From contig VRVR01000006.1 of NCBI GenBank assembly GCA_009859145.1, positions 62,001 to 126,000 of the forward strand: a stretch of 64,000 bases of DNA, read 5' to 3'. This document shows positions 64 to 53,488 of this stretch, piece by piece (the stretch's first letter is position 1; the number at the start of each line of letters is the position of its first letter). Origin of the DNA: Andalucia godoyi And28. Its lineage: Eukaryota; Protista; Jakobida. A model generated the notes under the pieces. The model saw only the letters and a program-made list of their open reading frames with translations, ran no database searches and was not told the origin of the DNA. The position numbers were made by a program, and so were the translations under genes.

Positions 64-1926
64 TCACTGTCGAAAACGGGCATGTGGTGCCGACATGGAG
101 GTGCCTTCGTCACGCACGAGCCGACACGGGTTTCCTTTGAGACTGAGTTCGAACTGCTTCTGCTCAAGCAGCAGCGTCCCTTTGCGCCGGATTGCTTCGA
201 CATCCGCAAAAGAATTGCCTACCGCAAACAGCAAACAGTACTCATTGCGCAGATTGCAGTATGGAAAAATACCGGATGCTCGTGATGGACGGAGGTGTTG
301 TGGGCCTGCTAGCGTCCGCACATTGCTAAGTCGGTCAACCGGATGCAGCTGCAGTTTGTGCTCCTTCAAAAGTTCCCAGATGTCATCCGAGGAAAGGTCC
401 AAAGGTGGCAAAAGCCATGCACAGAATGGTCTTCCGGGAGCAATCTGGGCAGAAAAGAGCTTCACCAAGTGCGCGGCGCTGAATCTTCCCAGACGAATAT
501 CGACGAGAATCGGCTCTTCGTCCTCTGCACAACATTCATACTCACCATCTTCACCACATCCCTTAGAAGATATGAACTCGAATTCGCCTGGTCCTACAGG
601 TGCTAGGAGAAACAAGAGGCTTGTTGCAATGCAGTAGCATTTTCGGATGAAAGATAGACTTTTTCTGCAAGGCAGCCAGGCAACGGAATCTCCTCCGGAC
701 TCCGCATGCTCGTGGTCGAGAATATCTTGCACCAGTGTGGTCTTCATGGAATGGACAACATGAGTTCGACGAACCAAACGCGCGCTTCGAAATCTTTGGA
801 GCAGCACTGGACCATATTCCAGGAAATTCGTCGCCAGCTCTTGGCCGCGAGAACGATCCCAAATCCTCTGCATATGATCTGCCGCACATTGCGGATTACA
901 CTCGCTGCCCCCATTGCTGCTGCTGCTGCTATCCGTAAACAAGCTAATGGTTGCCGGAGGATGACCAAAGCCAAGGGCAGGCTTCATCACGAGCGCTGCT
1001 CTATGCGAGCCAGCGAGACTCTCCTTGGTCTCGGCTAGCGGCGATGCCTGTGCCTTCTGATCCTCGAGAAATGATGCTCCAAGTTGCATGAATGCTCGCT
1101 CAACTTCTTCTACTGTTTGGCAATACCATCCTTCAATCACATTTCCGATGCAGTTATCGCTCAGGAACTTGGAAATGCTGAATCTCCACGGAAAATCAAT
1201 CGGTGGATGCAGAATGCCGCGCTGACAGAATTCTGCTAGCGATTGTTCGTGGTCTCCCATAATCCTGACGCTGTGCTCCGTGCACCGACCGCAAACTTCG
1301 TGCATCCACTTCTGCGATCCTTCGAACAGTCCGGAATAAGGAACAATGCAGAACGACGCATTGGGCGGGAACCCCTCGATATAATCCACGAAGTAATCCA
1401 CAAGTTCGGACTGGATGTCATCGTCCACGACGAGATTCTTCCCAGATGTCCACAGGAACTGGTCATCTTTGAGATCCAGCAACCTGCTGCAGAACTGCAC
1501 ATGTTCCCAAATCGCGACGTTGTCTTTGGGTAGGACTGCCTTGTCAATACCCGATCGCAACAAGGGGATCGTCCGAGCAGGATGCACCACCTGATGTTTC
1601 ACCACAAGTTCTCTATTCCCTCCTGATCCAGTGCGTGTCGTCTGCATCGTGTGACTGGGCAACGAGCAGTGTGCCCAAATGTGCATTCCAGGCCCAATTA
1701 CCTTCTCTGGACATATTGAATAGGATATCACAATCTTTCCTTTTAATCCCTGATGAACAGCCTTCTTCTTTGTTTCATCCACAACTGCCTCTATTTTCTC
1801 GAAATTTGTTCTCGATCGCGAAGTAAACTCAATCGCATGTGCCGCAGAGCTCCGTCGAAACGACCCTCGACGCTCTTCAAGCTGCAGCTCGTTGATTCGC
1901 AGCGATCCTTCCACTGCACTCTCCAT
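64..1926 (-). CDS. Hypothetical 620-aa protein with degenerate ATP-grasp-like motifs
   Basis: Long uninterrupted ORF. Motifs QTVEEVERAF, VMKPALGFG, PVLLQRF, GEFEF and ILVDIRLGRF occur in the order and spacing of the ATP-grasp lid, nucleotide-binding and E-x-N-x-R-like segments. Confidence 0.55.
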   Translation of the reverse strand: MESAVEGSLRINELQLEERRGSFRRSSAAHAIEFTSRSRTNFEKIEAVVDETKKKAVHQGLKGKIVISYSICPEKVIGPGMHIWAHCSLPSHTMQTTRTGSGGNRELVVKHQVVHPARTIPLLRSGIDKAVLPKDNVAIWEHVQFCSRLLDLKDDQFLWTSGKNLVVDDDIQSELVDYFVDYIEGFPPNASFCIVPYSGLFEGSQKWMHEVCGRCTEHSVRIMGDHEQSLAEFCQRGILHPPIDFPWRFSISKFLSDNCIGNVIEGWYCQTVEEVERAFMQLGASFLEDQKAQASPLAETKESLAGSHRAALVMKPALGFGHPPATISLFTDSSSSSNGGSECNPQCAADHMQRIWDRSRGQELATNFLEYGPVLLQRFRSARLVRRTHVVHSMKTTLVQDILDHEHAESGGDSVAWLPCRKSLSFIRKCYCIATSLLFLLAPVGPGEFEFISSKGCGEDGEYECCAEDEEPILVDIRLGRFSAAHLVKLFSAQIAPGRPFCAWLLPPLDLSSDDIWELLKEHKLQLHPVDRLSNVRTLAGPQHLRPSRASGIFPYCNLRNEYCLLFAVGNSFADVEAIRRKGTLLLEQKQFELSLKGNPCRLVRDEGTSMSAPHARFRQ

Positions 1927-2332
1927 ACTGTTCTTTCTATTCCTTTTCCTCGCTCCCGATCTGTGTGCAAATTGAGACGAGCACGTGAGAAAAAGAAAAA
2001 GGCATTAAATCAAACAACAACAAACTCATGCTCGGAGAAAATACGCGGGTTTTCTGAACGAAGAACGAGGAACGAGGGACAGGGGACGGGGGACGGGGAC
2101 TGGCAGAAAACCCATCGAGAGAGGGAAAGAAAAAGAAAAATCTGGAAAAAACCGTGCAACTCGCATTGAACTTCAACCTCTGCTGAACTGGTCAACTGGA
2201 ACCCGTCATTTCCGCTTTGAGGAAAAAACATCCAGACACGACTTGTTCGCTTTCCTCCTGCAAATCCGAAACTACAGTCTACACTTACAGAAACACACCC
2301 GAGTGTTTTTTCTTACTATTCAAAGTATCTTC

Positions 2333-2334
<2 letters not shown>

Positions 2335-2386
<52 letters not shown>
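2335..2386. repeat. (TTA)n microsatellite
   Basis: Perfect TTA tandem run in the divergent intergenic region. Confidence 0.95.
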
Positions 2387-2387
<1 letters not shown>

Positions 2388-2472
2388 TGCTTCTTTTCGT
2401 ATTCACGCAGAACATCAAGAGGGAAAAAGAAGAAGAAGAAAAAACAAAACAAAAAATAATAATATAATAACA

Positions 2473-3414
2473 ATGGGAATGTTTCGACTATTCCGGGCAC
2501 TGCGTTCCTCAGATCCTCCGCGAATTACTCCACTCATTCATTATGTGCAGTCGACGCGGGCATCCGTGGATTCCGCACCGAAAGGCCGAAATATTTCCGA
2601 CTCGATCGCGATTTCGTTTACTTCGCACTTGGACGCCGTTGATTCTCTTCTAGAGTCGTCACTGAATTCCAAAATTGCCGTTGCAGATCCATTTGTTCCA
2701 AAGCGTGAGGCGACCGATTCCGCTCCCGCAATGAATGGCACTCCTGCAACTGCGTCAGATGTAACTGCGCTCAATCCGTCGACGCTCGACGATGACCTGC
2801 CGACTCCTGACGCGAGTGTTTTAAGCGTTAGTGTCGAAGCAGATGTGCAGACGAGCATGCAGCCCTGTCTAGCGGAGCCATCGAGGACCATTCCTGTGGA
2901 GTATTCGGATGCATGCTATGACATGCGGAGTCTCGATCCTCTGTTTTTGCGAAGTATGACCAGCGCACGACTTGTTTCGTACAAGGGAAAAGACTACGTG
3001 GCAAACACATTTGGGCCTCCTGCGTCTGATGCGATGCTAAATTACAGATCAAATGGTTTAGAAAACCTTGCGGACACGAATGCTGAGTATGTGTATGACT
3101 ACCTGCTGTCTTGGCAATCGACCCCTGGGCTGACGCAGTTTGCGGAAGACCTGGACCGGCTTGTCACGGAGGTGGTGTGGAAGAAATGGTACAAGTTTGA
3201 ACGGGGGGCGACGCTAAACCAGCTTCTGCAGGTGCGGGAACTCGTTGAAAAACACCCGGAAATTGTGGACCAAGTGAGGGAGAAGGGCTGGCTTTACTCG
3301 TCGGCGCTGCAGGTCCCGGAGCGAATGCGGACCGTTTTTCCAGATTCCAAGCGCCGAGTGTACGCGCATTCGTGGGCAGACATGTTCCGTGGAGGTCTCG
3401 AGTACTGGACCTGA
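2473..3414 (+). CDS. Hypothetical 313-aa protein, possibly mitochondrion-targeted
   Basis: Single ORF with an Arg/Ser/hydrophobic N-terminus (MFRLFRALRSS), a low-complexity linker and a globular aromatic-rich C-terminal half. No family recognised. Confidence 0.7.
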   Translation: MGMFRLFRALRSSDPPRITPLIHYVQSTRASVDSAPKGRNISDSIAISFTSHLDAVDSLLESSLNSKIAVADPFVPKREATDSAPAMNGTPATASDVTALNPSTLDDDLPTPDASVLSVSVEADVQTSMQPCLAEPSRTIPVEYSDACYDMRSLDPLFLRSMTSARLVSYKGKDYVANTFGPPASDAMLNYRSNGLENLADTNAEYVYDYLLSWQSTPGLTQFAEDLDRLVTEVVWKKWYKFERGATLNQLLQVRELVEKHPEIVDQVREKGWLYSSALQVPERMRTVFPDSKRRVYAHSWADMFRGGLEYWT

Positions 3415-4012
3415 TCTTGCTTGGTTTTGCAATCGGTCGGAGAACACCGTGCAATATGTGTGCACGTGCACTGTACATACTTGTGTATTTAGTCGTATTA
3501 ATGGCGAATTGTTATTGCTCGCGGATATTCATTTATTCTTTCACTGAGCAGCGAGCATAGGTAAGACCTGAATCGCTCTTTTTCTTCTTTTTTTCTTTCA
3601 TTCTTCCTTCCTTATCGGCCGGAAAACCTACACAGTATTAAAACGAAGCTAAATTATACATCCCAAGAGCAAGGAAGGAAACAGACCCAATTTAAAAAAA
3701 AAAAAAGGGAGCACAGTCGACGTTGTTAGAAACCCCTCAAAGTACAGACGCAACAAGCTTCCAATTCACACCCCGAAGAAAAAAAGACGAAGCGAGAAAT
3801 GGAGAGTAAGACAAATGGGAAAACATGGAAAAATCACCATGAGCGCAACGGAAACCCCCACACAGACCTGCACACCATTGCCATCATTATGCATGCACAA
3901 CAACAGCAACAGCAATAACAATAACCAAAAAAAAAAAAAAAAAAAAGAAAAGAAAACATCATTGCAACTGGATTGCCGCCAATATAATTAACAAAGCAAA
4001 CAAACAACCGAG

Positions 4013-4982
4013 TTACGAAACTTCTTTGCGATGCTGACGCAAAATGGGTGTGATGTGTTTGAATGCTCGTCCAATGTCCTCGATGTTCTTCGCACCTGTG
4101 AGCACAACCTTTCCAGAAACGAAGATCAGTAACACAACCTTTGGAGAAATCATCTTGTACACCAGACCGGGGAACAGCTCCGGCTCGTACAGCGCAAGCC
4201 CGCCCTTGGTCTCATCAAACAAGCGCTCCAATCGAATGGGGAATCGCATGTCTGCCGTCGCAACCATATTCTGGATTTTAAAGTCCTTGAAAGAAACGTC
4301 ATTGTAGCTCGGATTAATGCGCTGAATCACTCGCGCAAACTTCCGGCCTGCAGTCAATGCAGAATCCGTGGTCTTCGCTCCTGTGACAACCAGCTTTCCA
4401 GACGAAAAGATGAGTGCCGTCGCTTTCGGATCTCTCAAACGCATAATCACAGCAGCAAAACGCTACACATGGAATCAAAAGGAACAGAAAATAAAAGAAA
4501 AGCAAACCAACAACCAACACACAAAAACGCCATCATAAGTGCACTTTCTCAACTACCACCACCACAACGACAACAACGACAACCCCAAAAAAAAAAAAAA
4601 ACCAGAAAGAAAGTACTCGAAAGCTAAAAAGAACAAGCAAGCACAGGCAGCCCAACACATACCTTTGGATTATACTCTGTGTTTCGTGCCTTTTGCGCAA
4701 TCTCAGGCAAGTCAAGTGGCATTCCAAGATTGACAGTGCAGACCATGTTTCTATAAGAATTTACGAACCCAGTAAAAAACACATAAATGACATAAAAAAG
4801 CAAATTAGATTAAAAATCATTCAAAGATCACCCACGGCGGGGGGCAAGAGCGAGAGTCAGAACGAAACGGGCGGGTGCAAAAGGACAAATGATACATACG
4901 TTACGACAAACTGGGTTTCCTGCTCATGCGCTGCCGTTGCAGTCGGAAACGGGGTCTGGATAGAAGGCGCTGCCGAAGACAT
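4013..4982 (-). CDS. TBP: TATA-box binding protein, 3 exons
   Basis: Spliced product reads ...[14 protein letters not shown]...RNTEYNPK|[23 protein letters not shown]...YEPELFPGL. Two GTATGT...TAG introns (about 4897-4750 and 4660-4465); ATG at 4982. Confidence 0.97.
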
Positions 4983-5344
4983 CGTTAAACACAAGAGAGA
5001 ACGGAAGAGACGAATGCGGTCTAAACAGGGAAAGACAAGAAGAAGAAAGAAGAAAGAAGAAAGAAGAAGGAGAAGAAGGAGAAGAAGAAGAGAAGGAGGA
5101 GGAAAGGACGCAAAGGAAGGAAACACTGGTGTGAATGTGAATTGAATGACGAAAAAACGGGCAAAACACAAAAAGATGATCGACATTTGTCGCCGCTGGA
5201 GAGCCAGAGTTATTATGTTTTAATTTTTTGATAGTTTGCTTTACGGTGAACAGGCACAGAGAAAAGCAAAGATGAAAACAGCTCAAAGACGTGATGGAAT
5301 GGACATGGACACCATTAGGTTGACGTGTAGGTAAACGAGGCAGG

Positions 5345-23065: not shown

Positions 23066-25915
23066 ATGTCAAATCCAAATCCGTTTTCGTTTCCATCTGG
23101 AAGCGGTGGAGCGCCTGCTAATCCATTTACGTCGTTTGGACAAGCTGCGGCGCAGTCACAACCTCTGGGATCCAGTGCTGCCCCCGCACCCGCATTCGGT
23201 ATTGGATCGTTTGGTCAACCAGGTCAACAAGGTCAGCAGCCTCAAAGTAGCCAAGCACTTTCGTTTGGAAGTACTGGTGCGTTTGGTCAACTTTCTCAGA
23301 CTCCACAAGGCAATCAAACACCCTCATTCGGTTCATTTGGACTCGGTGGACAACCGGCTCAGGGCGGATCAGCTGGTGCTAATACAGCTGCGACTCCGTC
23401 TTTTGGAACAGCTGGTGCTTTTGGTCTGTCTTCGAAGCCGCAGGCAACCAACGCGCCGTCTGGGTTCGGCGGCTTTGGGCAGCCAGCATCCCAGGCACAG
23501 CCTTCACAAACGACAAGCACGGTGCCGTCTGGGTTCGGCGGCTTTGGGCAGCCAGCATCCCAGGCACAGCCTTCACAAACGACAAGCACGGCGCCGTCTG
23601 GGTTCGGATCTGCGGGTTCTGTGCGACCTTTCAGTGCACCGATTAGCACAACGATTGGTTCTGTTGGACAGCAAACCCCTGTTGTTCCTGGGGTGTCTGC
23701 TACCTCTGCGCCGTCCGTCTTCGGCGGTTTCGGAACTGCAGCACCGTCGTCCACCGGATTTTCGCTTGGAGGAGCACCAACCGCCGCTGCGGCTCCGTCA
23801 ACTGGTGCATTTGCATCGTTCGATGCAAATGCAGTGGTGTCTGCCATGAGTGGCCCCGTATCTGCTGTTCCAACTGGTACTGCGGCTCCTTCCAAGGCTC
23901 CGACTCCCAGCGGGTTTAATATTGGAAATAGCCTCACCTCAGGTGCGCCGCCATCTTCATCTTCAGCCGGGGCACCCACCAACCTGCAACAATCTGCTGG
24001 CTCTACTGCTGCCGCAAATCCAGCCACAACGACAAGCGGTCAAAATTCCAGTGGTTCGTTTTCCTTCTCGACTTCAACTGCAGGCGTTCCGTCTGCTGGC
24101 TTCTCATTTCCAGGAATCTCTGGTCCCGCAACCTCTGCGACGGCTGCATCGGCTGCACCTGGTGATTCTCGCAAAGTTTCCGAGAGTACTGTGAGCGCTC
24201 CCTCGACTGCTTTTTCGATACCATCTTCCTCATCGGCGCACTCCTCTTCTGCAGTACCATCAACGATGCCAGTAAGCTCGGCTACCACCAGCTTGACGTT
24301 TCCGATCCCGTCTTTGGGACAATCGGCAACGACGACAACGCCATCCGCATCTGTTCCTGCGTCCTCCACAAGCGGTACAGCCCCGAACACCACAGTCCCA
24401 TCAGCAACGGCGACTTCCGTCGCCTCTGGACAGGCTGCGGCCAGTGGTTCAATTGCGCATTTGCCGAATGCGGGCCCTGTGGCTCCCATTTATGAGCTTG
24501 CAAAAAATTTAGACACTAATTGGAACGGGGATACGCGAGTTGAAGACGTTATCAAAGATCAAAAGTATGCAAATTTGAAGCGTTTCTTGGAGGCATTTTT
24601 GCAGCAACGCAAGGCTGTGAAGCAAGAACAAGAAGAGGTCCGAAAGTCGTTCAAGAAAGCAACCGAAAATCACCTTCGATTTAAGGCGTCGTTCGCCATT
24701 CTGGAGCATGTCACGCACGAACTGCAGGCGAATGTGAAACAAGCGAACAGCATGTTTGCGGAAATCAAGGAGCAGATGGCAAGACTCTTCGAAATCGCAG
24801 AGTATATTCGTGCTGATATTCCATTTATGCACCAGCAAACTGTGGATCCGTACAACAGGAACACAGTCTTTGTGGTGTCCAATCCTTTGGAACGCGAACT
24901 CGGGGAGACGTATTTTAAGTTTTTGTCAGCGCAGACAGAAGAGTTTTCTCACCGAATCCTCCGCGTCCAATCGTATATTTCGTCTTTGAATGATCTTCTC
25001 GTTGTTTCCAAGGAAGATGGATCGTCTGTTGTGCCGTCTGAGCCTCCTGCTCAGATGGTCCGCACCATTCTGAGAAGAATTTTCTCCGAATTCACGTACA
25101 TTGCAGATCATTATGCGGTCACGCACGCTGAGATTGCCCGAGTGAAAGGTCTTTTCTTGGAATGGTGGAAGAGCCGGAATCCGCGTGCTGCTCGGGATCC
25201 TTTTGAAGCGCATGCCCGGAAAGTTGAAGAGGAAAAAATTGCAAAGCAACATCGTGAGCTGGACTTTGCCTTTGCGCAACAGCAGCAGCGAGCTGCAGCT
25301 TCGATGGGATTCAATCCGGTGGCCACAGGTCCAGCCAATGGTGCACGAGGATTCGCATTTGGAGGTGCTGCTGGTTTCGGAGGGATGGGCATGAACAATA
25401 CTGGGGTCAACAGGACTACAAACGCGATGGGCAACGCAGCCCCGACTGGCTTGTCTTTTGGTGCATTCGGTGGCGCACCTGCTCAGCCGGCATCGGGTGG
25501 GTTTGGTGCATTCGGTGGCGCACCTGCACAGCCAGCATCGGGCGGGTTCGGTGCATTTGGTGGCGCACCTGCACAGCCAGCATCGGGCGGGTTCGGTGCA
25601 TTTGGTGGCGCACCTGCTCAGCCGGCATCGGGTGGGTTTGGTGCATTTGGTGGCGCACCTGCTCAGCCGGCATCGGGTGGGTTTGGTGCATTTGGTGGCG
25701 CACCTGCTCAGCCGGCATCGGGTGGGTTCGGTGCATTTGGTGGCGCACCTGCTCAGCCGGCATCGGGCGGGTTCGGTGCATTTGGTGGCGCACCTGCTCA
25801 GCCGGCATCGGGTGGGTTTGGTGCATTTGGTGGCGCACTTGCACAGCCGGCATCCGGTGGGTTCGGTGCATTTGGTGGCGCTGGTTCTCGTCCAACTACT
25901 TTGGGACAAAGATGA
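23066..25915 (+). CDS. FG-repeat nucleoporin with central coiled coil and FG repeats at both termini (Nup58/Nup49-like)
   Basis: N-terminal FG/SFG repeats, S/T/A-rich linker, helical core (about aa 480-720) and C-terminal GGFGAFGG repeats. Confidence 0.8.
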   Translation: MSNPNPFSFPSGSGGAPANPFTSFGQAAAQSQPLGSSAAPAPAFGIGSFGQPGQQGQQPQSSQALSFGSTGAFGQLSQTPQGNQTPSFGSFGLGGQPAQGGSAGANTAATPSFGTAGAFGLSSKPQATNAPSGFGGFGQPASQAQPSQTTSTVPSGFGGFGQPASQAQPSQTTSTAPSGFGSAGSVRPFSAPISTTIGSVGQQTPVVPGVSATSAPSVFGGFGTAAPSSTGFSLGGAPTAAAAPSTGAFASFDANAVVSAMSGPVSAVPTGTAAPSKAPTPSGFNIGNSLTSGAPPSSSSAGAPTNLQQSAGSTAAANPATTTSGQNSSGSFSFSTSTAGVPSAGFSFPGISGPATSATAASAAPGDSRKVSESTVSAPSTAFSIPSSSSAHSSSAVPSTMPVSSATTSLTFPIPSLGQSATTTTPSASVPASSTSGTAPNTTVPSATATSVASGQAAASGSIAHLPNAGPVAPIYELAKNLDTNWNGDTRVEDVIKDQKYANLKRFLEAFLQQRKAVKQEQEEVRKSFKKATENHLRFKASFAILEHVTHELQANVKQANSMFAEIKEQMARLFEIAEYIRADIPFMHQQTVDPYNRNTVFVVSNPLERELGETYFKFLSAQTEEFSHRILRVQSYISSLNDLLVVSKEDGSSVVPSEPPAQMVRTILRRIFSEFTYIADHYAVTHAEIARVKGLFLEWWKSRNPRAARDPFEAHARKVEEEKIAKQHRELDFAFAQQQQRAAASMGFNPVATGPANGARGFAFGGAAGFGGMGMNNTGVNRTTNAMGNAAPTGLSFGAFGGAPAQPASGGFGAFGGAPAQPASGGFGAFGGAPAQPASGGFGAFGGAPAQPASGGFGAFGGAPAQPASGGFGAFGGAPAQPASGGFGAFGGAPAQPASGGFGAFGGAPAQPASGGFGAFGGALAQPASGGFGAFGGAGSRPTTLGQR
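25455..25880 (+). repeat. 45-bp coding tandem repeat, about 9.5 units (GGFGAFGGAPAQPAS)
   Basis: Near-identical 45-nt units differing mainly at synonymous sites. Confidence 0.95.
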
Positions 25916-35051: not shown

Positions 35052-36614
35052 CTAGAATTGGTCGAGATACGTCTGAAGTCTGCTGGCATACTCGGGGGCA
35101 TACGGAAACTTGACAATGCTCTTGCCACATGTCTTCACCAGTCGAAACAGCGATTCCTCGCAAACACACCAAAGGATATTCTTTCGGAAGTCTGCGGCTG
35201 GAGACTTTGCGAGAAGCAGGGTCTCCAGAGCACCCTGGATCGCACAAATAAGAGTTACCAGCTGGTTGAGCGCATCGGCAAAATCGACGCCTTCTCGGAA
35301 TGCAGTCTCTACCAGACTGCAAGATGTGCGAATCGAAAAGGCAAGCGGCAAGTCGGCATACGTTGACGGATCGAGCACTGCCGATTGGCGAACTCTTTCA
35401 TTTTGCAAGACACGAGGAACTACTTTTCCAACGCAAAAGTCGGTCAATCGGAGTGCAGCAGCCCAAATGAAGTCCAACCCACGTCGAGCCGGTGGACGCT
35501 TGGCGGTGAACATCTTGCGAGAAGTGCGAGGTTGGACCCTGGAAAGCGAATCTTTCAGGAACTTGTCGGGTGTTGTTACGATACCGATGGGAGCCCTTGC
35601 AGATGCATTGGGGCCCGAATTCTGGACGGATGCTCTGGCAGCTGCAACGGCACTCGACCCAACCCTGTCGAATCCACGACGGATCTCGAACATCACCAGA
35701 CCAAAAAAATCCTCAAAGATTGGATGCCGCGCATGCAGAGTCATCGAAAGAGCTTCTGCGGCCTTCACAATCCACATGGAACTTAGCGCGCGCTTCGCCA
35801 GTGCAGGCACTTTAGGTAGCGCGTATCCTGCTTGGACAAGTTCCAACGAAGACAGTCTTGCGTACTCGGTCATAATGCATGACACAAACGTGTGCGAGAG
35901 GCCGACAAACATTTCGCAGACAAACAACAAGTAGAACAGCACAGCCCAAGTACGCAACGAAAAGAAAATTGCAAATACCGCAGACACTGGATTGAAGAAT
36001 TCGACACTGAGGAGAAAACTCCAAGTGTAATTCAGAACCGTGACACCCAGTGTGCAGAATAGCATCAACGACAGAACCAATGTGAGAATGCTTCGATAAA
36101 ATGCAGAATAGACCGTTGATTTCAGGGTTCCGCGGATAAACCACAATCTGGAAACGCGAATCGATGGAAACAATGGAGGAGCGAACGGAAGAAGCTCGGC
36201 TCGACACAGCGCGGAAGCCAGGACTGCAGACAACAGCAGAACAAATTCTCGAGACACGCAAGACTGGTAAAAGATGTCACACTTGGCAGTAAAGTGTGTA
36301 AAGCTCGAGATATCGAGCAGCCAAATCAACGAGGAAAACGAAACAAGTGCATGAGAAGCATGCAGCCAGAACGCAGAAGGCTTCTGTTTTTCAAACGAAA
36401 TCATGCATTTCGAATAGACATAATGAATGAGAAGCATCGGAAGGATGCCCACGAACGACTGCACAGAGAAGAGAGGAACAGGATATGTGGAAGGAACGAA
36501 TCGGCCAATGAACAGTGAAGCCTCCGTAACAAGGAAGCATGAAAGAAGAGACCATGCAACAGACGTCCCTTCTCTTCTTTGCACTTCTTTACTAAATACC
36601 TCCAGCGCGCTCAT
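35052..36614 (-). CDS. NDC1: Multi-pass membrane protein, NDC1 nucleoporin-like
   Basis: About 6 N-terminal TM segments with the FP.I motif, then ..TE.., AL..L...R..IF and a helical C-terminal domain. Confidence 0.6.
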   Translation of the reverse strand: MSALEVFSKEVQRREGTSVAWSLLSCFLVTEASLFIGRFVPSTYPVPLFSVQSFVGILPMLLIHYVYSKCMISFEKQKPSAFWLHASHALVSFSSLIWLLDISSFTHFTAKCDIFYQSCVSREFVLLLSAVLASALCRAELLPFAPPLFPSIRVSRLWFIRGTLKSTVYSAFYRSILTLVLSLMLFCTLGVTVLNYTWSFLLSVEFFNPVSAVFAIFFSLRTWAVLFYLLFVCEMFVGLSHTFVSCIMTEYARLSSLELVQAGYALPKVPALAKRALSSMWIVKAAEALSMTLHARHPIFEDFFGLVMFEIRRGFDRVGSSAVAAARASVQNSGPNASARAPIGIVTTPDKFLKDSLSRVQPRTSRKMFTAKRPPARRGLDFIWAAALRLTDFCVGKVVPRVLQNERVRQSAVLDPSTYADLPLAFSIRTSCSLVETAFREGVDFADALNQLVTLICAIQGALETLLLAKSPAADFRKNILWCVCEESLFRLVKTCGKSIVKFPYAPEYASRLQTYLDQF

Positions 36615-39494: not shown

Positions 39495-39595
39495 CGACAC
39501 GAACAGGATTCGAACCTGCGCGGGAAATCCCAATTGATATACTCGGACAATGCAGTCGTTCGAGTCAAACGCCTTAACCGCTCGGCCATCGTGTC
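39495..39595 (-). tRNA. tRNA-Ser(CGA) with a 20-nt intron at 37/38
   Basis: GACACGA acceptor stem, TGGCCGAGCGGTTAAGG A-box, CT-CGA-A anticodon loop, long variable arm GGGATTTCCC, GGTTCGAATCC B-box and a downstream oligo-T terminator. Confidence 0.95.
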
Positions 39596-41154: not shown

Positions 41155-41883
41155 CTATGGGTGCGCGTCGTTCGTAGCACCGACCCCAAGACCACTCGAT
41201 GCCGCTGCACCGCCGCTGGTCAGAGCAGAAGACGACGACAAAGAGGGGGGAGGAGAAACAGGAAGAGGAGGAGGAGGAGGAGATGAAAGACCCTCGAGCT
41301 CAAACGAGATTGGAAACTGCAGAAACCCCAAGAGAACCGAGTGTGGAATTTCAAGACTCAGAACTTGTCGTTTGCATCTCTTTAGCCGCAATCGCAGCGA
41401 GCTGATGAATTCCTGAAGATGTAAAAACGAACTGTCCATGTACTCCACGTTGTTCTGCAGGCTGTGTCTGATCTCCTCGGAAACCTGCTTCATATGCGCA
41501 GCGTCTTGTACGGCAAGCGACTTTGCATACAGCGTAAGATACTGGCTATATGCAGTTTCCATTGCGTCGTGGATCGTCTCGACGTTCTTCATTACCTTTT
41601 TCATCCTTTTTTGCTCGTCATGAAGATCCTTTTCAAAGTACAAAATCTGGTTCATCACGTCCAGCAGAACCGGAAACGAGCTCGATATCTTTTCGTGTTG
41701 CAGTCTCTTTTCCATCGACAGAATCCCCTTGTGAATTTCTTGCAGCGACTCAGCTAGATCGCGCAAAGACGCATAGAACCGATCAATGATCTTTGTAAAG
41801 CCGCACTCAGGCCCTTTCAAATCAGGCTTCAGCTGAAACCAGCCGTCCTGGTCAGACTGGTCCGAAACTGCAAACGTCTTCAT
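41155..41883 (-). CDS. Hypothetical coiled-coil protein
   Basis: Helical heptad-like ORF from MKTFAVS; no family recognised and the exact ends are uncertain. Confidence 0.5.
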   Translation of the reverse strand: MKTFAVSDQSDQDGWFQLKPDLKGPECGFTKIIDRFYASLRDLAESLQEIHKGILSMEKRLQHEKISSSFPVLLDVMNQILYFEKDLHDEQKRMKKVMKNVETIHDAMETAYSQYLTLYAKSLAVQDAAHMKQVSEEIRHSLQNNVEYMDSSFLHLQEFISSLRLRLKRCKRQVLSLEIPHSVLLGFLQFPISFELEGLSSPPPPPLPVSPPPSLSSSSALTSGGAAASSGLGVGATNDAHP

Positions 41884-42276
41884 CGAAACTGAAATTCGTT
41901 CTGCTATTTTTCCTCTCGATTCTACGCTGGCAAGACAGGAGCAAACGAAAAAGAGAAGAAGAAAAAATATTGACAAATCCTCGCTTTCTTCCGCGAAGCG
42001 ATCAGACGAAGAAACACCATCAAAGCCTCGAAGGTCACAGAACCAAAGGGAGCAATGCCTCTTCGGGAGCGCCCAGATGACTTGGGGGGGATGTTGTTCG
42101 ACATTGGCCGACCCTGAGTTTCTCGTACAGTGGCTTTTCGTCGTGGCGTTGGCAACGCGAGACTCGAGAGTGACAGGGAACCTGCAGTGTTTTTGCGAGA
42201 AGTCCGTGAAAACGTAGCTGGACTTCTTTTGTGGGTGTGGTGCAAGAAGGTGGTCCTGTGAGACTGCATACATGAC

Positions 42277-49964: not shown

Positions 49965-50645
49965 TTTTATGCTTATTCCTTTCGTTCTTCACCTGTTTTT
50001 CTTTCTCTCTTTTTTTTTCCTTCCTCCTTAATCTTTCTTCTCGTGTTTTACCTGGCTGAAATGTTTGGTTTCTTTTTTATCTTTTTCCACGATATTCCGA
50101 TGTGCGCTCACCCAAACATGAAAACAGAAAGAAGAGGTTCGATTCGAAAAGACCACGACTCTACAGTGGGTGTGGTTCCCTCCCCTCAGAAAGACCGCCT
50201 GCGATACACAGCATCAATACTAAAATGGTTCTAAATTGGTACCGCTCGCAATGCTGCCTGACAGTCGATCCTACGAAAACCAATCGTCCAGAGCGCTCCG
50301 AGAGTGACCGATTCGCAACACATCCGAACAGTGGACGACGACGAGAGCCAAATGAAAATGAAATAAGAACAAATAAAATCCCGAAAACGGGAACGAGACA
50401 GTGAGATTTCGTGTTTTATCTAGTCTTAGTCAGATGGAGGGGGAAAAAACCCTACGTTAGGGTTTCAAGCGTTTTTTCTTTTGGTCAGAAACGATGAAAA
50501 CGAAAACATAGCACAATAAAATGAGTTTAAAAGCTGCTAAAATGGTGAATGGTAATAGACCGAGCGTTGCGAGGAGAGAGAGTGCTACAAGCTGCTGTTT
50601 GGTGAGTGTGCACCGTCAATTCAGACATCCATTGCAAGGTTCGCT

Positions 50646-52214
50646 GTGGTGCTACGAATGTTTGTGTGCAGGCCGCAGGGCAAGTGTGTGCGGTTCACAT
50701 TTCGGTTGTTTTCATCGTCTTCAAAAAATGCAAGTGGGCGCGCAAATGTAGCAACGACGCAGCAAAGCGCTCATGGACGTGGATCGGATGGATCTTCTTC
50801 CACAACCAGTGCAACCAGTACTGCTTCTGTGGGAAGATATGTCAAGATGTTTGACACAAACATGACAACGAGAGCATACGCGCGAATGCTGCAGCACGAG
50901 TATCAGTACGTAGTGTCTACTCTTCTCCCAGACATTGAGCGGTTCAGGAACTTTCGGGATCCGCAGGCGTGGAAAGATGATGGAGTTGCTGAGCGGAAGA
51001 CCCGCGATGAGTTTCAGTACGTGTATTCTCATTTGAAACAGCTGCGACAAAAGATCAATGATATGGAGGTGCAGGATGTCGTTTACTCGGATCCGGCCGC
51101 GCAGAATGGCTCGGTTTGGATCTCGGCTATTGTGACTCTGTACAACGAATCGACACGACGCCTCGTCGAATACCAGATTGTCAGTCCGGAGGAGGAAGAC
51201 TACGAACTGGGAATGATTTCGTACAACAATACATTGGCACTGCAGATCATGCAGAAGCAGCCTGGAATCTGGATTGACTTGACAGACGACCTGTCCGTTC
51301 CTGAGCACGACAGGGCATGGATGTATCTCGTGGCGGTGGACTATGTCAAACCAACCAGTGCGCATTTGAAACGGCTGGACGAGATGGCTTCCGTAAGCAC
51401 AGAACAGGTGGAGCGGATTGAGAGGCTGATGCAAATTGGTGCAGAGCGACATTTGGATATCCTTTTTCAGAACAGAAGAGCGTATCTCGCCGACATGGAA
51501 AAAATGCGAAACTTTGCAATTGCACAGGATATGCAAGCTCTCGCGTCCCTCGAAGAGTTTACGCTTGCATTCGAGAGTCTGAAGCCGGAGGAACGCAAGG
51601 AATTCCTCGAAGGATTGGGAAAGCGTGCAGCGTTTGAAAAGTACGAGCAGGTGAACCCGGTGTTCTCGCTCCGGTTCGGAAGACGCATTGATGAAATGGC
51701 GGCTATTGATCCTGAAAAGAGAGATCCAGCGGAAGTCCGCCAGCTGGTTGACGAGGTGGAAAATTTATTCGAAACGTTGGTCATGGAGAACGATGTCCTC
51801 TTCTATCGGTTGATGCGCGACTCGAATTCGTTGAATGACGAAATGACCGCAGGCAACGTAATGGACGTCTTTGGAGAAGACTCTGAGGCCCCGACAGATG
51901 GGTCACTCTCAACTCCCAAGAAACTAAGAGGGGATTTAGAGTTTGCGGACGAGGAGAGTGACGAAGATGGTGATAGCGAAGATGAAGATGGTGATGATGA
52001 GGATGATGGCGATGGTGAAGATGATAATGTGGGAGACGACGAAGAGGACGGTTCCAACGAAGAGCTCGAACGGTTGGATGATGATGATGATCAATTCCAA
52101 ATGTTTGAAACAAAAAAGGATATGTTGCATGCCAGCAAGAATGAGAATGCACAGTCGTCAGAAAGCAGTGCGCCACTGCCGCAATCAATGAAGAAGAAGC
52201 CCTCCAAGACGTAA
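50646..52214 (+). CDS. Mitochondrion-targeted GreA/GreB-like transcript cleavage factor with long C-terminal extension
   Basis: Presequence-like N-terminus; T..AY..L..E....P, L...I.D..V, V.I.A.V.L, Y.IV..EE.D...G.ISY...LA...K..G and a terminal YLVAVDYVKP; acidic tail. Confidence 0.75.
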   Translation: MVLRMFVCRPQGKCVRFTFRLFSSSSKNASGRANVATTQQSAHGRGSDGSSSTTSATSTASVGRYVKMFDTNMTTRAYARMLQHEYQYVVSTLLPDIERFRNFRDPQAWKDDGVAERKTRDEFQYVYSHLKQLRQKINDMEVQDVVYSDPAAQNGSVWISAIVTLYNESTRRLVEYQIVSPEEEDYELGMISYNNTLALQIMQKQPGIWIDLTDDLSVPEHDRAWMYLVAVDYVKPTSAHLKRLDEMASVSTEQVERIERLMQIGAERHLDILFQNRRAYLADMEKMRNFAIAQDMQALASLEEFTLAFESLKPEERKEFLEGLGKRAAFEKYEQVNPVFSLRFGRRIDEMAAIDPEKRDPAEVRQLVDEVENLFETLVMENDVLFYRLMRDSNSLNDEMTAGNVMDVFGEDSEAPTDGSLSTPKKLRGDLEFADEESDEDGDSEDEDGDDEDDGDGEDDNVGDDEEDGSNEELERLDDDDDQFQMFETKKDMLHASKNENAQSSESSAPLPQSMKKKPSKT

Positions 52215-52348
52215 GGCACCTTGCGTTTATTCAAGGGAGGCGTTGCATATGGGTAGAGCATGTATAAAACACTAAAGATATGGCATTCGTTGATAGGATA
52301 GGGTTTTTCTGTTCTTCTTTAGTTAATGCAGAATTGTGCAAGGCGATT

Positions 52349-53488
52349 CTATTGCTGCTTTGCGTTTTCGCGAGCTGCAAGCTTTCTGGCGACCAACGCT
52401 GCCATGTAAGCATCCTCATCAAAGTCGTCACCATCATCGTCGTCTTCTTCTTTCTCTTCTCCCTCTCCCTCTCCATGCTGCTCTCGATCCGCTGCATCTG
52501 CCTCTTCAGACGCAGATGCAGATGCATGATCCGGGGTAGTCCGGTCAGTTGAATCTCCATGACCCCCCTTTCCATCATTCTCCTCCTCATCCTCATTGTC
52601 GTCGTCGTCGTCCCATCCTGCTTGCCATTCAAACTTTCGAGAGTGGTTGAAATTAATAAAGAACAGTTCATCGACCTGTTCACCATCGTCCATCTTCTTC
52701 TTCCATTCATTTCGCTCCGCCCTCTCCCTTTCAAACGTCTTTAGAAAATCAGCCTGCTTCTCCACGACTTCTCGAGCAGTCTTACACTCATGGTACGCAT
52801 CAAAATACGCCTTGTTGATCTTGTAGAAGTGTGTACCCCATTTGAACTTGGACATGACTGCGTCTCCCTCGTCTTTAAATCCGCAAATATACAACGACGC
52901 CGCAAGCGCTTCTGCACAGCTCAATTTGAAAGGGATTCCAAAATTAACTGGATTGGCAGCCACGCAAAGCGGTAGCAACCTCTCATGTGGCGATTTCAAC
53001 TTTGAAAACGGCACCTCATTGAGCTTGTTCCAAGAGCAGTCAACAACGCAAAGCCCCTTCTTCGCGATGACTTCGCGGTCTTCCATGGAAACTGCCTGTT
53101 TCCCAGTCGGAGTCAGTACCACTCCGCCAAACCTTGTCGACAATGGCAACGTTCGAATCATGTGCATTCGCGCAAGCTTCAAACCCGTGCATTTCTTTGC
53201 GTCGCACTGGTTAAAATGCCACATCGCCAAGTCCAGGTTGATCACTGGAGCCACCGAAGACTCCGCATCGCCTTCTTGATCATGTATGTATTCACCTTGT
53301 TCTGTTCGCTCTTTCCAATTCCGAGTGTCCCGGTACTTGTGCACCGCAGATGATCGTGAGTGTGCATGATGCCCATGCCCATGTCCAGAAGACGATGACG
53401 ATGACCCTCCTCCTTTTCGTCCACCTTTCTGCGAGTTGCGCGGATTATTCATGTCACCCCAGTCATCTCGACCCATCTTTCTGTCCAC
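52349..53488 (-). CDS. TSR3: 18S rRNA aminocarboxypropyltransferase
   Basis: LAMWHFNQCD.KKCTG.KL, VVDCSW, RLLP..VAANPVNFG.P.KLSCAEALAA and FKWG..F...N. Confidence 0.96.
   Translation of the reverse strand: MDRKMGRDDWGDMNNPRNSQKGGRKGGGSSSSSSGHGHGHHAHSRSSAVHKYRDTRNWKERTEQGEYIHDQEGDAESSVAPVINLDLAMWHFNQCDAKKCTGLKLARMHMIRTLPLSTRFGGVVLTPTGKQAVSMEDREVIAKKGLCVVDCSWNKLNEVPFSKLKSPHERLLPLCVAANPVNFGIPFKLSCAEALAASLYICGFKDEGDAVMSKFKWGTHFYKINKAYFDAYHECKTAREVVEKQADFLKTFERERAERNEWKKKMDDGEQVDELFFINFNHSRKFEWQAGWDDDDDNEDEEENDGKGGHGDSTDRTTPDHASASASEEADAADREQHGEGEGEEKEEDDDDGDDFDEDAYMAALVARKLAARENAKQQ

Follow-up and report, generated by a model that had tools for sequence, protein, structure and literature searches.

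In the transcript-cleavage factor GreA, cleavage stimulation depends on two acidic residues at the hairpin tip, D41 and E44, which contact the catalytic Mg2+ (PMC7527559, PMC4598747). The Gre fold does not by itself imply such stimulation: Gfh1 from Thermus and Rv3788 from Mycobacterium have the fold but act as inhibitors of catalysis, for which they need conserved acidic tip residues, and Rnk, a third precedent, has a much shorter coiled coil (PMC4598747). According to PMC7050145, jakobids are the only eukaryotes in which mitochondrial transcription is carried out by a bacterial-type multisubunit RNA polymerase (RNAP). The same text states that (i) rpoA-D are mtDNA-encoded in Andalucia, RpoA, RpoB (YP_007890475.1) and RpoD having rows in the supplementary table, (ii) a Gre homologue is targeted to the mitochondrion, and (iii) neither Andalucia nor four other jakobid genomes yielded a gene for a phage-type RNAP. 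The extent to which bacterial transcription machinery outlived endosymbiosis can be read from the accessory factors of jakobids, and the Andalucia Gre homologue has already been used as an “ancestral trait” argument, in PMC7050145 and in a 2025 paper that restates the point (PMC12699882).

The gene analyzed here lies in a 64-kb stretch of DNA, referred to in full as the window, and belongs to an uninterrupted open reading frame at 50646..52214 on the forward strand. The ORF tool applies bacterial start rules and so set the start, artefactually, at a GTG (50646); the first ATG is at 50658, and the resulting coding sequence (50658..52214, +) is complete and intronless, with 518 codons and a stop. 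Its product is letter-for-letter identical to Andalucia godoyi ANDGO_04888 (ANDGO_04888.mRNA.1, Table S1, Gray et al. 2020, BMC Biol 18:22, PMC7050145). The gene is nuclear gene ANDGO_04888 of the jakobid A. godoyi, and because the 518-residue protein is identical, the window is A. godoyi nuclear DNA. A preliminary description of this DNA had identified the lineage and mentioned that a Gre-like protein was noted in Andalucia; both points hold, since this is the same gene, and the presence of rpoA/B/C/D in the mtDNA, which it had put forward as a check, is stated in PMC7050145. The existence and the Gre annotation of ANDGO_04888 are already published: the portions of PMC7050145 examined here list it as a GreA/GreB factor, intronless and scoring 76 for targeting, and call it a “divergent” Gre homologue. 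Those portions make no mention of a three-member family, of a conserved helical and acidic module, of a degenerate tip with its substitutions, or of a tail-to-tail pair with Tsr3. The findings on these four points refine the published claim and do not overturn it.

When 1.84 billion representative proteins were searched exhaustively with HMMER, only two relatives emerged: P0002, encoded at locus L001 of JGI/IMG metagenome 3300042934, and P0003, encoded at locus L002 (1699..3441) of the Logan assembly of SRR15116022. In a word-indexed search the full-length protein retrieved only itself (P0001), the Gre part alone retrieved nothing, and the three-sequence profile retrieved P0001 and P0003 only; two metagenome scans, whose patterns covered either the Gre-plus-extension alignment or just the extension, gave no extra loci. 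The P0002 gene model as called is 5'-truncated, and a missed intron explains the lost N-terminus: upstream in L001 there is a 109-nt first exon followed by a 72-nt intron (2825..2896) with yeast-like signals (GTATGT...TACTAAC...CAG). Splicing restores a protein of 418 residues that begins MYSRRVIQILRRAFSHG and includes helix 1 of the hairpin; the Andalucia orthologue is without introns. In BLASTP, the Andalucia Gre-like protein is 36% identical to its L001 counterpart and 24% identical to that of L002, and the adjacent Tsr3 proteins give 60% and 48%, from which we conclude that the two loci come from related but clearly different organisms and that the Gre-like protein evolves faster than Tsr3. 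All three proteins share one layout: a basic N-terminus, a Gre core, a helical region of ~160 residues directly after the Gre C-terminus, and a D/E-rich tail. A. godoyi is the one organism for which co-occurrence of the Gre-like gene with mitochondrial rpo genes is shown.

The core consists of two parts. The putative equivalent of the Gre N-terminal coiled coil, with two predicted helices of ~27 residues, spans aa 63–138 (50844..51071, +), as placed by HMMER alignment to GreA residues 7–75 and by the helix-loop-helix of an AF2 model; a linker and the Gre C-terminal globular, RNAP-binding domain span aa 139–232 (51072..51353, +), as placed by PF01272 and by alignment to the GreB C-terminus, and end in AWMYLVAVDYVKP (aa 220–232). 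PF01272 (GreA_GreB C-terminal) scores 35.2 bits (E=1.3e-8), and up to 37.3 bits, on the Andalucia protein against a Pfam gathering cut-off of 26.9; the two relatives pass this cut-off as well, the best E-value in the family being 3.8e-11. With phmmer against the PDB, E. coli GreA (1grj) is matched at E=2e-4, pairing query residues 74–205 with GreA 7–134 and covering both domains; the three-sequence profile improves the GreA match to E=1e-9. E. coli GreB (2p4v) is covered by this profile from residue 11 through to its very end, where ...WYVNAIEYVKP is paired with the family's W.Y.V.V.YV.P, so the GreB terminus quoted in the preliminary description is correct. The full-length GreA and GreB models of NCBIfam align over the whole core, spanning the coiled-coil region, with scores of 31–34 bits (GreA) and 26–30 bits (GreB) against cut-offs of 139–188 bits, which is below equivalog-level membership. 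PF03449, the Pfam model of the Gre N-terminal coiled coil, matches none of the three proteins, even with hits allowed at E<=10; of the GreA_GreB_N/GreA_GreB pair of domains suggested for checking, here searched with Pfam, the C-terminal one was found and the N-terminal one was not.

The AF2 model was built from the three-sequence alignment and has a mean pLDDT of 61, with values of 66–80 in the C-domain beta strands, 70–84 in the extension helices and ~50 in the hairpin, where two 27-residue helices of Gre-like length are predicted over the region on which PF03449 is silent. A model from the single sequence was discarded as a meaningless all-helix structure (pLDDT 45.7). When the alignment-based model was compared with the PDB using Foldseek, the top 14 matches were all of the Gre family (GreA, GreB, Gfh1, 2pn0 and Rnk), and the top 10 (GreA, GreB and Gfh1) aligned over ~160 columns. 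The best conserved part of the protein is the RNAP-docking C-domain. The most conserved motif of this domain, which reads IS.NSP.ar.l.G in the bacterial proteins, takes the form LSFNSPLGSRIMG in L001 and, in P0003, LSHEHPISRAIMG. As judged from sequence and model, ANDGO_04888 is Gre-like, clearly above chance; the Gre-type C-terminal domain of the preliminary description is borne out by the PF01272 score, the profile match to GreA and the Foldseek result alike.

After the core follows a C-terminal extension of 286 residues (aa 233–518), close to the 300 first estimated. Its first part is a conserved all-helical region (aa 233–395; 51354..51842, +), to which both relatives align and for which the AF2 model gives helices, and its second a low-complexity polyacidic tail with the short basic end MKKKPSKT (aa 396–518; 51843..52211, +). 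The “long helical and acidic tail” described earlier is accurate in this order, ~160 helix-prone residues and then a D/E-rich tail. Twenty-five alignment columns within the extension are invariant in the three proteins, among them the motifs R..YLA, F...FE.L...E and FGR.ID, and HMMER aligns both relatives through aa 359–396 of the Andalucia protein. The densest 60 residues of the Andalucia tail contain 36 D/E, and the acidic tails of the relatives 25 D/E per 60 residues. Searches of the extension against Pfam, NCBIfam, PDB sequences and, with Foldseek, PDB folds gave no significant match. A gene-model fusion or other annotation artefact is ruled out: the extension is part of a single uninterrupted ORF in all three genomes, and, being shared by both relatives, it is not an oddity of Andalucia. 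The conserved extension constitutes a defined, testable domain. P0003 ends, after its acidic tail, in an AT-hook-like KRRGRPRKPG, which hints at contact with DNA; the Andalucia protein and the L001 protein lack it and have short basic ends only.

The hairpin tip, NFRDPQAWKDD (aa 98–108; 50949..50981, +), lies at the site of the catalytic D41/E44 pair of Gre factors in HMMER and MAFFT alignments. The two alignments agree on both positions: GreA D41 is opposite A104 in Andalucia, Leu in L001 and Ala in P0003, and GreA E44 is opposite D107 in Andalucia and Asp in L001, and is lost in a 7-residue deletion in P0003. The latter protein also has PPPP within helix 1 of the hairpin. Where E. coli GreA and GreB have D41 and E44, the Andalucia protein has Ala and Asp, and across the three proteins the acidic pair is not conserved. 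The loop RDPQAWKDDG (aa 100–109), reported in the preliminary description as a replacement of the tip motif, is present as described, and the word “remodelled” used there is backed by the non-conserved tip together with the conserved extension. Acidic residues are still found near the tip, D101, D107 and D108 in Andalucia and E and DD in L001, and could stand in for the canonical pair, allowing residual or alternative catalysis. Since the N-terminal domain is too diverged for PF03449 and the AF2 confidence is ~50, the exact alignment of the tip could be off by a few residues.

Compared with E. coli GreA (1grj) and GreB (2p4v), the Andalucia protein has a two-domain layout of the same size, a predicted hairpin of ~75 residues and a globular domain of ~80, as well as the motifs IVG..E and IS.NSP and a GreB-like C-terminus (..V.YVKP). 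It differs in its low identity (~20%), an N-terminal domain unrecognised by Pfam, scores far below the NCBIfam cut-offs, a C-domain interrupted by an insertion, and the presence of a presequence and of the extension. Like Gfh1 and Rv3788 it is predicted to adopt the Gre fold, with Foldseek matches to 2eul, 2f23 and 3aoh, but the acidic tip pair is not conserved in the Andalucia family, and Gfh1 and Rv3788 are without a C-terminal extension. In HelD, a Gre-like hairpin is fused to a larger module. Rnk (3bmb) and the N-terminal domain of HelD (6zca, 6wvk) use a Gre-type C-domain or hairpin as a secondary-channel anchor for RNAP in a protein of different function, as the Andalucia protein may also do; Foldseek gave E=0.023 for Rnk and a non-significant E of ~0.3 for HelD. 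The helicase-like ATPase module of HelD is absent from the Andalucia protein.

We propose that ANDGO_04888 is probably an imported mitochondrial secondary-channel factor of the Gre family, remodelled such that its cleavage activity is altered or weakened or its role is regulatory or anchoring, and fused to a lineage-conserved helical and acidic module. The N-terminal presequence would direct import into mitochondria, where, by homology, the bacterial-type RNAP encoded by the mtDNA (RpoA-D) would be bound by the C-terminal Gre domain at the beta-prime rim of its secondary channel, and the hairpin of ~27+27 helical residues would then reach inside. Given that the family has not kept the catalytic pair, modulation or anchoring, in which cleavage would be stimulated less or differently or the contribution would be regulatory alone, would be more probable than classical Gre-assisted hydrolysis of the transcript. 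The extension and acidic tail would supply a second, lineage-specific function; we can only guess that the module lets the factor touch a further partner, perhaps by mimicking nucleic acid or by tethering it to other proteins associated with the nucleoid or RNAP, and a role in coupling to RNAP or the ribosome, as suggested earlier, is speculation. Rival explanations, in falling likelihood, are a canonical cleavage factor, a repurposed role away from RNAP, and a location outside mitochondria.

That the protein is a fully functional, canonical transcript-cleavage factor, active in anti-backtracking and proofreading, with its tip carboxylates shifted (D101, D107/D108) and its extension dispensable, appears unlikely to us, even though the published annotation in PMC7050145 is of this kind. 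The hairpin has a Gre-like length, two of the three proteins have Asp at the E44 position and there are further acids in the tip loop, and cleavage rescue would benefit a bacterial-type RNAP for which no further secondary-channel factor is known. However, the D41 position is non-acidic in all three proteins, and P0003 combines deletion of E44 with a proline run in helix 1. PF03449 fails on every member of the family, and the NCBIfam scores of 26–34 bits stand against cut-offs of 139–188. The extension, moreover, is conserved and therefore not a neutral add-on. ANDGO_04888 is not a conserved textbook GreA/GreB, and counting it as retained bacterial proofreading may overstate the case, because the tip is degenerate and an extra module is conserved.

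A Gre-derived core recruited away from the RNAP secondary channel, to nucleoid or DNA binding, the mitoribosome or RNA processing, with the helical and acidic extension as the functional part, seems improbable. The degenerate catalytic tip, the AT-hook-like end of P0003, and an extension and tail as well conserved as the hairpin would all fit such a protein; what argues for the channel instead is that conservation is highest in the RNAP-docking C-domain, that the sole identified host is a jakobid, the only group with a bacterial-type mitochondrial RNAP, and that no similarity to a ribosomal or nucleoid protein was found among PDB sequences or with Foldseek.

The import step of the secondary-channel model draws on the N-terminus, aa 1–62 (50658..50843, +), which is presequence-like (MFVCRPQGKCVRFTFRLF...) and continues into a Ser/Thr-rich linker, with 9 K/R against 1 D/E in aa 1–65. 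The first 30 residues contain 6 K/R and no D/E, and the published mean of four targeting predictors (PMC7050145) is the 76 given above, rated “high”; the presequence-like N-terminus of the preliminary description is thereby supported, as a prediction of targeting. The N-termini of all three family members are basic and acid-poor (6 K/R and 0–2 D/E per first 30 residues), and each is thus predicted to carry the kind of presequence found in nucleus-encoded proteins of the mitochondrial matrix. A cytosolic or nuclear protein with a fortuitous presequence-like N-terminus is highly improbable: localisation is predicted only, and nuclear proteins show features like the acidic tail and the basic C-terminal ends, but the targeting score is high, basic and acid-poor N-termini recur independently in all three homologues, and the target of a Gre factor is absent outside the organelle. 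Between the presequence and the Gre core, the Andalucia protein has a Ser/Thr/Gly-rich stretch of ~40 residues (aa 24–60; 50727..50837) that both relatives are without.

With the remodelled mitochondrial factor as the favored reading, we tentatively entertain a broader one, possible though short of probable, in which the three proteins represent a small and possibly jakobid-restricted family whose Gre scaffold, without the canonical carboxylates, is permanently fused to a helical domain and a polyacidic tail, and acts in RNAP recycling or release, nucleic-acid mimicry or tethering, and not in proofreading. If true, the last bacterial-type RNA polymerase to survive in mitochondria would have a secondary-channel factor of a new type.

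The Gre-like gene is arranged tail to tail with a gene for Tsr3 (Fer4_RLI + Ribo_biogen_C) in each of the three genomes. The pairs are located at 50658..52214 (+) and 52349..53488 (-) in the window, 2716..4044 (+) and 4094..5146 (-) in L001, and 1699..3441 (+) and 3456..4475 (-) in L002, with 3'-3' spacers of 134, 49 and 14 nt, respectively. Across the three loci there is no synteny beyond this pair, all other neighbours being different, and no functional link between the Gre-like gene and Tsr3 is evident; either the micro-synteny has been retained or overlapping 3' ends constrain the pair.

A telobox-like octamer, AAACCCTA, occurs three times in the window, each copy flanking the Gre-like gene: two form the palindrome AAACCCTAcgtTAGGGTTT at 50447..50465, ~200 bp upstream of the gene, and the third is at 52299..52306 in the 3' spacer. 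With an expected count of 0.65, and three copies reached in 2 of 100 shuffles, the enrichment is only marginal, and the motif is absent from L001 and L002; we therefore rejected it as a meaningful element. The window as a whole is compact and intron-poor, with genes on both strands and ~50% GC, in keeping with its assignment to A. godoyi nuclear DNA. It contains a probable intron-containing nuclear tRNA gene of 101 nt at 39495..39595 (-), scored at 47.1 bits by Rfam and unreported by ARAGORN, and long ORFs (372–949 aa) without a Pfam match at E<=0.001 at 64..1926 (-), 23066..25915 (+), 35052..36614 (-) and 41155..42273 (-). Recognisable genes include those for 5-oxoprolinase, urocanase, HMG-CoA reductase, beta-amylase (GH14) and Sec1, as well as a MnmA-type tRNA thiouridylase, Tweety, Las1, a DUF1295 protein and a subunit of the CCT chaperonin.
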